This document shows positions 2,814 through 7,856 of a DNA stretch of 64,000 bases, piece after piece. Position numbers and translations under genes: made by a program. Every line of letters starts with the position of its first letter. Position 1 is the stretch's first letter. The notes beneath the pieces are model-generated. The model was not told the DNA's origin, ran no database searches, and saw nothing but the letters and a program-made list of their open reading frames with translations. The DNA comes from Amoeboaphelidium protococcarum X5 (taxonomy: Eukaryota > Fungi > Aphelidiomycota): positions 1,886,164-1,950,163 of the forward strand of contig JALDTO010000098.1 of assembly GCA_023515725.1 (NCBI GenBank). The letters run 5' to 3'.

Positions 2814-4424
2814 TCATACTTCATCAGTTTTAATCTGCATCATGAACGCATACAAAGCTGGATCAGACGTTGATCGAGGAAACACTTCCTTATGACTGTT
2901 AGAAATATACGAAGTCTCAAAGTTGTCCAAACTCTTGATACGATCCAATATCGCACAAAACATTTGAGCATACAGCCAGTCATTACCATCAGCGTTTATA
3001 ATCTGTTGTTGTAGAAAATTCACATGCTTGTAGCACTTCTTAATTTGCGTATCAATTAGTCTCATCTTGACTTAACCAGTAGCGTGTGATATATAATGAT
3101 CACTTAGCAGCTTCACCATAGATTAATCAAATTATCCAGATTCCAGACGCGAATAGAAATTGTCCGTCAACGACGCAATACTTGCAAACTATTAATCCGG
3201 ACCCACAAGTACATTGGCTGCCAAAAGGAAACGCTTCTCGTACGGAATCTATTAGAAGACATTCTCAGATACCCACTCATAAGGGACGCGCAAGTGTGAG
3301 GCCAGTAAGACTTGATGGCGCACAGGTAACTTGATATAAACTTGGTGATTACCAAAGACATTGCTAAAGTTATCAGCCAGTCTATCGACAGGCATTCTCT
3401 GGTACACACTAACCAGAAAATCAGCATTATAAATGTTCAAATTTCTACTGCTAAACAGAAGACGAAATCCGAATTTCACATAATCTGGCACTCCGGCCGT
3501 CTCCATATTTGAGATGATACATGACAACGGTTCCTGATTTAAAAGCATTTGGTCTTTATACTGCCAGTACAATGTAGAGACAGCTTGGAGCATTTTTAAC
3601 ACTTAAGGCAGATTACGATTGTGGTCCTACTTCATGATAAACTAGACACAAACCTTCATAAAATTAGTGAGATCTTCCACAGACAACGATTTTATCCACT
3701 GCTAGAATAGTATTTTGACCATATAGTCTTCGGATTTAACCGTTGCGTAGAAGTACAATCGCGCAAGTACATTGACATACTCAAAGTACCTGCTAGACTT
3801 CAAATGTTGCAGAACCAGGATGGGGTAGAATGCATTCTAATAACTGACCAGGTATTGGGGTAATTACTCGATCAACATGACAGAAGGAACGAGATCAATC
3901 AACTTCAGAGACTCAAATGATTAAACTGGTGCCGATTGGAGTGACAAATCTTGGTCAATCACCACCAATGTGAGAATCTTATACAGAATCATGCCAATAT
4001 TCTGCTGTGACTACGAATCGCCACCTATTAGCGGGTTCACATATTATATGTGAGATACTTGGGTCCTACCAGCATAGCCTGGAATTCGCAATCTCATCAA
4101 TGGATTCAGGCAATTGACATAATATTCCACTTCCTGGGCATTTTCGCTCCCAGAAGCCAGATGCTAAATGTATCTAGAAACATCCATAACTAGATAACTC
4201 GCACCATTATAGCCATCCCAACATGTGGCACCCTGATGAATGAAATACTCGAAAGATACAAGCTAGTCAATCTTATCTTTGCAGAGCGTATACTATTCCA
4301 CGCTATCATACAGCGGCAAGTTATGGTCCCCAACCATACGCGTAAGGAAGAGATCAGAGTAGCTAAAGGATTGAACCGCGATGATATTCGCTACAGAAAA
4401 GTATATCAGGTAAGATGCTAGCAT
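2814..4424 (-). CDS. Putative secreted protein of unknown function (536 aa), paralog of 4712-6244
   Basis: ATG4424 to TGA2814 in one frame. Signal-peptide-like start MLASYLIYFSVANIIAVQS. Shares sequence blocks with the neighbouring gene. Confidence 0.75.
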
Positions 4425-4711
4425 AATTGTCCTCTATTCACTACAGTCAGTTATGATGATGATGAAAATTTTTGAAAATTTTTTATAGTTCTGTTTCACA
4501 CTCCGACGATCATCATCATTCGTCATATCCTCGAATTCCGGGGCAGCGTATAGTCACCCCTTGGGAATACTATACATTTTCTGAGCAGCTTTGCACTAAT
4601 AAACGTTGCTATAAAACGAACGCACTGAAAAATTTGAAATAAAAATGTTCTATATATCATGATTATTGTCGTGCAATTAGATCTAATGATGTAAGTTCTG
4701 AATCAGTATCA

Positions 4712-6244
4712 TCACCCAACATTATCCAAAGCCTTGATACGTTCAAGAAGATGACAGTAATGAGGCGCAGCCCAATTATTAGGCTTTGATATCTCCAACG
4801 CGCAATACTTTATCTGTGCACTCAAACTTTTCTTATTCAGACTAACATTACCGTCTGTGTAATTTTCAGAATAGAAAAATCTTCTTCGTAAAAGAGACAC
4901 CAACGAATCATCAAATTCTCCATTTTATAGCCTATTCTCAAATTCAACAATGACATTGCTCATTGCCAAATCAAAATCTTCATTCTTGACAAATGAACGT
5001 ACAAGCAGCTAAAATCTTTCGCCATACAGCAATAGCTTGAACGCGTCATCAGAGACCCATTAATTTGGGACGCGGTAGTTGCGAGCAATCGTAACCTGCT
5101 TGATTAAAGGTAGTTGATTATACACTTGCTGTCTACCATATGGTTACTTGAAATTAACCACCAAATCCCGCTCAGACATTGCAGAAAATACTTCAACCAG
5201 AAAATGATCACCATCGTTGTCCAGGGTAAATTGCTTCTCTATCAACATTTTGAATGCCTAACCCACGTAAGATGGCACTTCAGCAGAGGTCATTCGCTTC
5301 AGAATCATATCAGATTTATATTTACAGTCAAAAGATGGGTAATCTTTAAAGTACGAATATACACGCGATAAAGCAGAGGTTGTCGCCAACACGGCCATTA
5401 AATTGCTCTTCTCATTCTCGATCTGAATGATGAATTGGATACAGAAAGATATCTGAAGTGCAAAATCAAAAGCTGGTATCTTTCGTAATATACCGTCCAC
5501 CAGCTTGTTGAATATCAGCTCTTTACGTCTGATGGCAGAGTAGATCAAAGTCTTGGACAAGGCTGCAACAAACTCTTTCTAACGCGTCTCCTGAATACGG
5601 GTAAGCAATGCGACAATATAGACAGGATCTACAAGATATACAACTGAGTCGGGCAGTTTATTTATAATAAAATCTGATGGAAGCAGATCGAGAAGTTGAT
5701 AAGATAATACTGGTTAATGATCCCAGACCATCTATCCCATGTCGTTTTGTGACACAACTTATGTCAACAGAAGATATAGCGTGCCACCAATATCGTAATA
5801 ACCAGGCGCGTTTCTGTCATATTACTCACCAACAAACCGGTAGGAAGTAATCTGGATCGCATTGCCACCAAGAGTGAGAGTATTTACACCAAATAGCGGT
5901 TTAAGGCATTATAGCGCAGAAGTGACATCCTAATGCCCATTGCTGTGGGTAGCAATTTTCACAATGTACCTCGACATGTCCAACTGAAAAGACATTCCAG
6001 ATGCGAGAGAGAAGTCATCATAATCGATAAGAGTCGTAGGCGCAGTCATACCAGATGGTTACAGAGATATCAAATCTCCTATCAAATATTCACATCTACG
6101 TCTCTCGTCAACATTGGAGTATAATTGGTCAAAGTGGCCTTACAGAGTGAGCAATTGATGATCACCTGCATATGCCCAGATATCATTTTACACAGCACTG
6201 ACCAGCTACAGTTGAATGAGCAATATCGTGAACCACACCAACAT
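4712..6244 (-). CDS. Putative secreted protein of unknown function (510 aa), paralog of 2814-4424
   Basis: ATG6244 is in frame with track fragments 5258-5560 and 4712-4903. Signal-peptide-like start MLVWFTILLIQLQLVSA. Shared blocks GDH, CLxPL, IGxxLYxxLT, RLxxGxFDxSxVxLL, CxxLxRIKxLDN. Confidence 0.75.
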
Positions 6245-6896
6245 ATTTTCGTGAAGCCAAAGTGGAATATTTACACCAGAAGATATCAATATGTAAAGGT
6301 TTTAGACTGACGTACTAGCAGAGATTTTCCTCCTTTTCCCGCCCCTTATCACACAGTAGCGTCTTTGCAACTCAGTCGTCTCCTGACTGACCAACTTTGG
6401 TACTGAGTCATGGCGAATAAATTATTAGGTCCACTTTAAATAAACATGCATTATATCCTTAAAGACTCACGTTTAACATTGGCAACCATGTTGCACTAAA
6501 ACCCGTTCTAATTCGGTGCTCGATCAGTCTACAGTATCTGACGGGCTTCAAGTTTCGCTTTAAATCGAGACTCTATTAATAATGTTGGTAGTTTCAACTT
6601 ATAGTCACTACCACTGCCATACTGTATTTATCCAGGAGTCATATGCAAAGCATATTGTGCATACAATGGCCAAGACATTCAGTGACACAGAGATTACGCG
6701 ATTACGACCAGCTTCGTTATAAACTCGCGGTTCAGTTTGAAATGATTATCAAGCAGGCGGGCGACGTTTCGATCGTACCCCTTAGCGGTTCCCACAACAA
6801 TTGAACTTGCTTAACGTCATAAATTTAGCGCATTACTTTCCACACTTTTGCACCAAACTCTTTGTCTTATTATCACCCATCTCTCAATTATTTACC

Positions 6897-7856
6897 ATGA
6901 TCTCTGTTGGTGTTACAATATTGTTTATAGTGCTTGTTACCTGTATTAGTGGATTCAACATCAATTCCGCGCAGACAGTGTTGCAGAGTAAGGAACCATC
7001 AGTTGCACCAACTCCCAAGATTGGATGTATGCTCTTCAAGTGTGGATTTAAATTGGCGCAATGTATGCTTGATGGTCAGTGCAGAGTGTGCAGTCAGTGT
7101 ATGAAGGATTGCCCAGCTGATTAGGGAGTTGACGCGTACCAAAAGTGCACCTCCAACTGCTTCTTCTTGTACTCTAATGAGAAGTTCAATGATTTCACTG
7201 GTTGCATGCTGAGTAACAAGTGTATTCCAGAAATGACATGGTCAGAGTAAAAGTGTCCGTCTCCTGAAAAGTTGGATAGACGTGATGTACGCGTCAAGAA
7301 TTTTGACTGGTAACTACTTGCTTAAAGTGGTGTAATGTATGTTGCCAGAGGATCTCATGAGATTTACGACTGTTTCCCATGTCAGCGCCTGGATTACTCT
7401 TACGCTACTGAGAATGCATAAACTGGTGCTCAAACTGTATGGTCCACTGATTTGTACTCTTTGGTCTCTGGCAAGAGCTTAGGCGATCAAGTAAACACTG
7501 GCTAGTATGTGCGTAACGCGTCATATGTACTAAAGTAGTTTAATGACAACACCTTATGGACTTAGTATGATCTATTTGGTATGCAGGTCACCGAGTATTA
7601 TTACGTCTTGGACTACGAACTGGATCCTTTGGACAATTCCAAGTTGAAGTACATGGTATACTTCTACTGTGGATCTGGCTTTGGCGGAGAGTATCAGGGC
7701 GCGTTAGTGTACACCAACAAGCCAAACACTTAAATTGAGCCAGAGCTAGAATAGAGATTTAAGAAAGTGTTAGTTGATATGGATCTTGCAGAATACTACC
7801 CACCTCTGAACTAGTTCTGTCAGCCGGCCTATGGTTCTTCTTGTCACAATATTTGA
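6897..7856 (+). CDS. Violaxanthin de-epoxidase-like (VDE/VDL/VDR family) lipocalin with signal peptide (319 aa)
   Basis: Cys-rich domain CMLFKCGFKLAQCMLDGQCRVCSQCMKDC...QKCTSNC...FNDFTGCMLSNKCIP; lipocalin motifs MYVARGSHEIYDCFPCQ and YMVYFYCGSGFGGEYQGALVYT, matching VDE WYITSGLNPTFDAFDCQ and YIFVYYRG..DGYGGAVVYT. Confidence 0.8.

Follow-up and report, generated by a model that had tools for sequence, protein, structure and literature searches.

The locus described here raises the question of what an aphelid, which engulfs algal cytoplasm and has no plastids, does with a gene of the violaxanthin de-epoxidase (VDE) family. A 2026 review frames VDE, VDE-like (VDL) and VDE-related (VDR) genes as genes of photosynthetic eukaryotes (PMC13181403). 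The gene lies in a stretch of 64,000 nucleotides, hereafter the window, from Amoeboaphelidium protococcarum X5 (assembly GCA_023515725.1, contig JALDTO010000098.1, positions 1,886,164 to 1,950,163, forward strand), and we call it paralog A, or A. Our reading, to which we assign a probability of about 0.5, is that A would be a native, secreted, two-domain VDE-family enzyme of old origin, likely acting on an epoxy-xanthophyll-like lipid of the host alga.

We began from the integrity of the gene, which is an intronless open reading frame (ORF) of 319 codons plus stop on the plus strand of the window. It is described by two entries, in which dN/dS is the ratio of nonsynonymous to synonymous substitution rates, TAR stands for TAA or TAG, and L003 is a second genomic copy of A.

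6897..7856, plus strand: complete coding sequence of paralog A; ATG at 6897, TGA at 7854-7856; Pfam VDE match of 86.3 bits; dN/dS 0.084 against L003
7122..7814, plus strand: span holding the 11 in-frame TAR (Gln) codons, which start at 7122, 7248, 7311, 7323, 7419, 7503, 7536, 7563, 7731, 7752 and 7812

Five of the 11 codons are TAA and six are TAG. Long ORFs fill the window only when TGA is taken as the sole stop, and TAR is about as frequent in them as CAR; TAA and TAG are thus sense codons of the aphelid genome. Their identity as Gln receives direct support from within the genome, because TAR and CAR exchange between diverged genome copies at three codons in paralog A and at five in a second paralog, B. 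The further TAR-codon differences between copies are one TAG/GAG and one TAG/ACG. The GC content of A is 0.42, with 0.475 at third codon positions (GC3), and neighbouring genes are alike. L003 shows an upstream in-frame extension; at that place the window copy has an in-frame TGA, which closes any longer ORF, so the start at 6897 stands. The start methionine and the hydrophobic stretch that follows it are kept in L003. We concluded that A is a functional gene native to the aphelid genome, its native status following from the TAR sense codons, a GC and GC3 like those of its neighbours, and the second diverged copy. The initial annotation, made from the letters of the window alone, had proposed this same ORF and had argued from TAR = Gln that it was integrated in the genome and not standard-code contamination; the TGA-only ORFs, the TAR/CAR swaps and the native composition bear it out. 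In what follows, alignments and trees used the translation of A under genetic code 6, and remote searches used its stop-free pieces.

A six-frame search of the aphelid genome with the Pfam VDE model (PF07137) found four loci, comprising paralogs A and B in two diverged copies each. The copies of A are the window gene and L003, on another contig; those of B are L001 (G000:C179:464092-464799) and L002 (G000:C135:84022-84729). Paralog B is 283 amino acids (aa) long from its signal peptide and scores 115 bits against Pfam VDE. Of the 960 bases of A, 60 differ between its two copies; counted by codon, 42 changes are synonymous and 13 non-synonymous, and the Nei-Gojobori estimates were dS 0.26 and dN 0.022, the source of the ratio of 0.084 given above. 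For the copies of B the ratio was 0.16. The flanks of the A copies are only 74-79% identical, with many gaps. Both paralogs, then, are kept under purifying selection in two diverged genome copies.

Membership of the family was assessed in the same six-frame search, as the initial annotation had suggested. PF07137 matched window positions 7023-7775 with E 2e-23 over model positions 3-232 of 242, that is, nearly the whole model, and the score of 86.3 bits is far above the curated cut-off of 25.7 bits. When four separate stop-free pieces of A were searched, VDE was the best or near-best Pfam family for each, and the pieces fell in the correct order along the model. The domains are laid out as follows.

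6897..6953, plus strand: N-terminal hydrophobic signal peptide or signal anchor, about aa 1-19; from hydropathy and conservation in the second copy, with an inferred cleavage site
7026..7223, plus strand: Cys-rich domain, with ten Cys at aa 44, 49, 56, 62, 68, 72, 84, 88, 103 and 109; from alignment to the plant-type VDE P0028
7284..7796, plus strand: lipocalin-type domain, about aa 130-300; from the Pfam VDE match, which runs to 7775, the alignment, and the fold modelled for a B-type relative, P0059
7809..7844, plus strand: C-terminal Cys pair; aa 308 is C249 of plant VDE, and aa 316 is conserved in non-plant members

The ten cysteines of the N-terminal domain correspond to C9, C14, C21, C27, C33, C37, C46, C50, C65 and C72 of mature plant VDE, and all ten columns hold Cys in both copies of A; one additional Cys, at aa 65, lies in the same domain. 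At the N-terminus stands one hydrophobic stretch, with a Kyte-Doolittle mean of 2.4-3.5 across aa 1-12. The sequence ahead of the first conserved Cys amounts to only about 19 hydrophobic residues and a short linker, and no plastid or thylakoid-lumen targeting sequence was seen. At the other end the ORF stops four residues past the last conserved Cys, and Asp and Glu make up 13% of the last 45 residues. These observations agree with what had been read from the sequence at the outset: a full VDE-type Cys-rich domain, a plain hydrophobic signal in place of a plastid transit peptide, the absence of a Glu-rich tail, and three motifs, which we located at aa 157-163 (YDCFPCQ), aa 255-259 (YFYCG) and aa 264-273 (GEYQGALVYT). 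The profile match and the alignment thus indicate that paralog A is a genuine two-domain protein of the VDE family, with a Cys-rich N-terminal domain, presumably helical and held by disulfides, and a probable lipocalin barrel.

We then asked which functional residues of VDE are kept, using P0028 as the residue ruler because it matches, without insertions or deletions, every residue listed in PMC13181403 (mature Arabidopsis numbering). Three motifs of A carry several of these positions.

7365..7385, plus strand: motif Y-D-C-F-P-C-Q; D158 is D114, C159 is the extra Cys at position 115, P161 replaces D117, C162 is C118, and Q163 is Q119
7590..7610, plus strand: motif T-E-Y-Y-Y-V-L; E233 stands at catalytic D177 and Y235 at W179
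7659..7673, plus strand: motif Y-F-Y-C-G; Y257 is catalytic Y198, and C258 is the extra Cys at position 199

The state of each plant VDE position in the two paralogs is as follows.

Ten N-terminal Cys, C118 and C249: kept in A; kept in B
D114 and Q119 (ascorbate site): kept in A; kept in B
Y198 (catalytic): kept in A; kept in B
Y214: kept in A; Met in B
D177 (catalytic): Glu in A; Asp kept in B
W179: Tyr in A; Trp kept in B
H121, D117 and R138 (pH/dimer switch): Leu, Pro and Ser in A; Met, Gln and Asn in B
F123, Q153 and F155: changed in A; Phe kept, Tyr and Asp in B

The replacement of pH-switch residue H121 is L165 of A, and Glu at position 177 is stated for VDL and VDR (PMC13181403). The equivalents of the active-site Asp and Tyr, a check that the initial annotation had proposed on a structure model, were thus found by alignment in Y257 and E233. 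Cysteines at positions 115 and 199 are common to A, B, their non-plant relatives and the algal short forms, in the motifs D-C-x-x-C-Q and Y-C-G. They adjoin D114 and Y198, two residues joined by a hydrogen bond in the closed form of plant VDE, and an additional disulfide between the two cysteines is a reasonable guess. The extra pair is one of four traits of a short, secreted, non-plastid clade that A shares, the others being a length in the range of 260-350 aa, an N-terminal signal and no acidic tail. Against a profile built from such short non-plastid proteins, A scored 152 bits and B 226 bits.

A three-dimensional model was made for the B-type relative P0059 and not for A itself. The model (predicted local distance difference test score 84, predicted template modelling score 0.81) shows a barrel of eight strands, with four helices ahead of it and one helix at the C-terminus. 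Its best match among solved structures was the VDE lipocalin domain, 3CQN, with a template modelling (TM) score of 0.80-0.82, followed by crustacyanins and ApoD; against models of plant VDE it reached TM 0.79 over 262 residues, its whole length. A piece of paralog B reached 3CQN by sequence (E 4.6e-4). Sequence searches of the PDB with single pieces of A did not reach 3CQN and gave only spurious matches to repeat proteins and rhodanese.

Relatives of the two paralogs were found in bacteria and in heterotrophic eukaryotes. With a 60-aa piece of B as query, HMMER found 43 significant matches among 1.84 billion representative proteins. Most of them have 260-350 aa and begin with a signal, and the matched part lies where it would be expected. 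Members from non-photosynthetic eukaryotes have signal peptides. Bacterial members carry Sec or lipoprotein signals, and their surroundings are bacterial in kind: P0005 comes from a Spirochaetales metagenome-assembled genome (MAG), among two-component, ExbB and toxin-antitoxin genes, and P0049 and P0004 lie on contigs of 66% GC among ABC transporter, FtsJ and UbiA genes. A VDE-domain member occurs also in five bacterial MAGs from distant phyla.

L006:10001-11440, L021:8001-8879 and L016-L020: bacterial VDE-domain loci, in Spirochaetales, proteobacteria, deltaproteobacteria and Caldiserica MAGs

P0005 has an N-terminal extension of 220 aa. Beside the bacterial VDE-domain gene of L021, at L021:9767-16633, stand genes for a lipase, a UbiE-type methyltransferase, a type III polyketide synthase, a UbiA prenyltransferase and an FAD/ALO oxidase, neighbours that may hint at a lipid substrate. 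Four long proteins with several matched stretches (P0003, P0016, P0018 and P0043) were dropped, as they gave no match to the family profile.

Among eukaryotes, the chytrid Quaeritorhiza haematococci, whose host alga is Haematococcus, encodes a relative (KAJ3084678.1, P0034; GCA_027596845.1, L011:6001-7120). The gene spans 1120 bases, more than the 969 that code for its 323-aa product, a difference that points to introns. The protein was deposited under the machine-given name 'Vitamin D3 receptor', which almost certainly arose when the symbol VDR (VDE-related) was expanded automatically. A related transcript comes from Leptophrys vorax, a vampyrellid that eats algae, and further eukaryotic members are found in Tribonema and as the short forms of Emiliania, Euglena and dinoflagellates. 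Cluster labels of a protein atlas, which serve as leads only, placed a mollusc-dominated VDE-domain cluster of 282 aa nearest (twice) and also returned a sponge-dominated one. In word-index protein searches the A2 profile recovered mostly algal short forms, P0034 recovered itself only, and the B-group profile added two unnamed proteins. The closest BLAST matches of A were bacterial-type proteins, at 24-28% identity and a full-length E of 1e-27; plant VDE matched A at E 1e-8 to 1e-10. Two metagenome scans for A-type sequences found no close relative of A.

The placement of the paralogs was examined in an unrooted tree of 37 rows and 292 columns (LG+C20+F+G4, with ultrafast bootstrap and Shimodaira-Hasegawa approximate likelihood ratio support), from which named VDR, VDL1/2, mollusc and sponge sequences are absent. 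Plant VDE and the algal short forms make up one clade with support of 100/99, and A and B lie outside it. Paralog B falls in a group of eight with metagenome proteins (96/92). Paralog A, on a long branch, stands in a polytomy (80/93) whose other members are the chytrid protein, one metagenome protein and the plant/algal clade, and joining A with the B group as one clade costs 3.8 log-likelihood units, which the approximately unbiased (AU) test does not reject (p = 0.34). The nesting of A within the sampled plant and algal sequences is excluded. Because the plant and algal clade excludes both paralogs at 100/99, a recent transfer from an alga is not supported, and the tree and the matches place A and B in the non-plastid part of the VDE family. 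The initial annotation had called for a phylogeny with VDE, VDL, VDR and non-photosynthetic homologs; ours places plant VDE, the algal short forms and the non-photosynthetic homologs.

The order of genes around B bears on its descent. In the aphelid genome that order is Leo1-like, VDE (B), phosphodiesterase, ArfGap and BRCT, and it recurs on the metagenome contigs L010, L008/L009 and L023. In their conserved parts the phosphodiesterase of L010 is 68% and its ArfGap 76% identical to the aphelid proteins. These relatives read the standard genetic code. A reading of L010 with TAR as Gln was rejected, since no TAR codon occurs in its VDE gene and the two that could be aligned stand opposite Arg and Glu of the aphelid protein. 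The conserved gene order indicates that B-type genes are inherited vertically within this lineage. At L008:8918-10900, L009:8915-10900 and L023:2-1915, all from metagenome or Sequence Read Archive assemblies, the B locus holds two VDE genes in tandem. The upstream one ends in an acidic tail and is not A-like, and in it Q119 or D114 has been lost. We rejected A as an ortholog of this upstream 'a' member: A matches L008a and L023a at E 3e-8 and 3e-4, whereas B matches at about 1e-25.

Taken together, the origin of A appears old relative to the species, by vertical descent or by ancient exchange with bacteria, rather than a recent gift from the host alga. Of the two histories offered at the outset, a horizontal acquisition in the sense of a gain from an alga is not supported, given the position of A outside the plant and algal clade and its bacterial and non-photosynthetic relatives. 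The alternative, an ancient family marked by scattered non-photosynthetic homologs, agrees with the relatives in bacteria, chytrid and vampyrellid and with the conserved B gene order.

Other genes of the aphelid bear on its handling of carotenoids. RPE65-type carotenoid oxygenases occur at three loci (G000:C182:36984-38525, G000:C98:1454143-1455132 and G000:C158:444520-445419), and a sugar-1,4-lactone oxidase (ALO) is encoded. Our search of the aphelid genome detected no lycopene-cyclase domain and no microbial rhodopsin, and its matches to SQS/PSY were ambiguous. The gene set would fit an organism that handles carotenoids without making them, the absences being weak evidence. Directly upstream of A, on the minus strand at window 2814-6451, lie two long ORFs of 570 and 579 codons.

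How might A work? The protein would fold in the oxidising secretory pathway and would not act in the cytosol; the digestive vacuole or the host interface is its most likely site. Its substrate would most likely be a 5,6-epoxy-xanthophyll-like lipid freed from the thylakoids of the eaten alga, and its chemistry either a reductive de-epoxidation or a cofactor-free rearrangement of the VDL type. De-epoxidation by VDE depends on ascorbate and a pH of 5-6, and the tautomerisation by VDL1 runs with no cofactor (PMC7056318; PMC13181403). The reductant-holding and catalytic residues D114, Q119 and Y198 are kept in A, with Glu at 177 as in VDL and VDR. Because H121, D117, R138 and the Glu-rich tail are absent, A is probably not switched like the thylakoid enzyme. 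Conversion of host epoxy-xanthophylls in the digestive vacuole is the most likely job in view of the chemistry of the family and of an organism that engulfs algal cytoplasm; by this analogy, a role of A on host epoxy-xanthophylls is plausible.

Several observations weigh against this reading. The signal of A was judged by hydropathy and comparison only, and with no charged n-region the stretch could be a membrane anchor. W179, the violaxanthin-binding helper of plant VDE, is Tyr in A, and F123, Q153 and F155 are changed as well. A lies on a long branch with no close relative, which weakens any account of its own history. Members of the same clade live in sediment and other bacteria with no obvious algal link, which argues for a more general lipid substrate. 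Such a general substrate and a plain carrier role are the serious rivals.

We consider it unlikely, to take the better of these two, that A is a secreted lipocalin with no catalysis, which would only bind or carry a hydrophobic ligand, be it a carotenoid, retinoid, sterol or fatty acid, either as an effector or to take it up from the host. Carriers make up most of the lipocalins (PMC13181403), the structural matches of the P0059 model that rank next after VDE include the carotenoid-binding crustacyanins and ApoD, W179, F123, Q153 and F155 are changed in A, and the authors of a study of the stramenopile MAST-4 proposed a plain lipocalin role for its VDE-like protein (PMC3998028). However, a carrier would have no need of the polar residues of the barrel interior that serve catalysis and the binding of reductant (D114, Q119, Y198 and an acid at 177), and both paralogs and nearly all relatives keep them; the Cys-rich domain, without which VDE is inactive, is complete as well.

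Somewhat more doubtful is an enzyme of the same fold that acts on an endogenous or general non-carotenoid lipid, such as another epoxide or an allylic lipid, in an old extracytoplasmic family from which the plastid enzymes were recruited. The spread of the clade among sediment and other bacteria and diverse heterotrophs is in its favour, as are the substrate-contact residues of plant VDE, which are not conserved, and the one bacterial member that adjoins lipase and prenyl/polyketide lipid genes. On the other side, all family members of known function act on epoxy-xanthophylls (PMC7056318, PMC13181403), and many of the eukaryotic holders eat or parasitise algae: the aphelid, Quaeritorhiza and Leptophrys do so, and molluscs and sponges would be added by cluster labels only.

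An ancient transfer between bacteria and the aphelid or fungal lineage would concern origin only and is compatible with any function; we think it improbable. The nearest full-length BLAST matches of A are bacterial-type (E 1e-27), and bacterial members are few and scattered among distant phyla, but neither A nor B falls inside a bacterial group in the tree, a clade of A with the aphelid B group is not rejected (AU p = 0.34), and an unrooted tree cannot give the direction of any transfer. Finally, a recent horizontal gain of a plastid-type VDE, VDL or VDR from the algal host, later retargeted to the secretory pathway, is suggested by the feeding of aphelids inside green algae, by a family best known from photosynthetic eukaryotes (PMC13181403) and by the fall of A on the plant/algal side of the tree with moderate support (80/93), but is very improbable given the plant and algal clade that excludes A at 100/99, best matches that are bacterial-type at 24-28% identity while plant VDE reaches only E 1e-8 to 1e-10, and the native codon use, TAR codons, composition and two diverged copies. 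For a VDR donor this judgement is softer, as the tree covers plant VDE and algal short forms.

Our preferred reading, that of a secreted enzyme likely acting on host epoxy-xanthophylls, can be carried further, and we offer the extension as an unlikely speculation. The non-plastid VDE-domain proteins would be extracytoplasmic enzymes with which algal parasites and grazers transform the epoxy-xanthophylls of the thylakoids they have eaten, in an acidic digestive compartment, and plastid VDE, VDL and VDR would be a recruited branch of an older secreted family. If this were true, the holders would be aphelids, the Haematococcus chytrid, the vampyrellid, possibly molluscs and sponges, and some bacteria, and the xanthophyll cycle would have a 'digestive' counterpart. 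An algal parasitoid keeps two selected, apparently secreted VDE paralogs with the catalytic core intact and with relatives in bacteria, a chytrid and a vampyrellid; non-plastid members of this kind change the likely history of a key photoprotection enzyme. The protein also offers a direct test of whether parasites and grazers chemically process host xanthophylls, a question of interest for the biology of aphelids, for the conversion of pigments by animals and other grazers of algae, and for the control of pests in cultured algae.

Our literature search found no paper linking VDE to aphelids, and A is best understood beside the systems that are known. Crustacyanin, ApoD and sandercyanin share the barrel fold and belong with the next-best structural matches of the P0059 model; unlike A, they have no Cys-rich N-terminal domain, no VDE signature and no catalytic residues. 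VDE-like proteins have been reported from heterotrophs before. A single-cell genome of MAST-4 holds a VDE-like gene that was read as alga-derived (PMC3998028), a VDE gene family is listed for the Manila clam genome (PMC5499747), and Coesel et al. (2008) reported no prokaryotic VDE homologs and took an oyster expressed sequence tag as contamination (PMC2483416). Like A, the MAST-4, oyster and clam proteins come from hosts with no plastids and have no N-terminal plastid extension. We compared them by description only; the reports were made in passing, and none is tied to the bacterial/heterotroph clade, to secretion or to an algal parasite.

Among the branches of photosynthetic eukaryotes, VDR (plants, green algae and diatoms) resembles A in combining a Cys-rich domain with a lipocalin and in Glu at 177, and A shares its polytomy with the chytrid protein that was machine-named from the VDR symbol. 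VDR proteins are about 500-590 aa long, against 319 codons in A, and were described as having no match to PF07137 (Coesel et al. 2008; PMC2483416), whereas A matches that model strongly. Plant VDE (Arabidopsis VDE/NPQ1; 3CQN, 3CQR) has in common with A the Pfam family, the two-domain core, the ten N-terminal Cys, C118, C249, D114, Q119, Y198 and Y214. Unlike plant VDE, A has no transit peptide and no Glu-rich C-terminal domain (about 100 residues), carries Glu for D177 and Tyr for W179, does not keep the H121, D117 and R138 pH/dimer switch, has the extra Cys pair 115/199, and lies outside the VDE clade. That is, A departs from a canonical xanthophyll-cycle VDE (EC 1.23.5.1) in targeting, tail, D177, W179 and switch residues, and placement. 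The algal short forms of Emiliania, Euglena and dinoflagellates group with plant VDE to the exclusion of A, in a clade that has no named VDL1/VDL2 anchor. VDL1 and VDL2, which in chromalveolate algae provide violaxanthin-neoxanthin tautomerase and related steps on the way to fucoxanthin, are proteins of the plastids of photosynthetic algae, unlike A, and they share with it a short or absent acidic tail and Glu at 177 (PMC13181403). VDL1 is cofactor-free, is modulated only by pH and retains about 20% residual activity at neutral pH (PMC7056318), and it is the nearest functional analogy for a protein without the plant switch.

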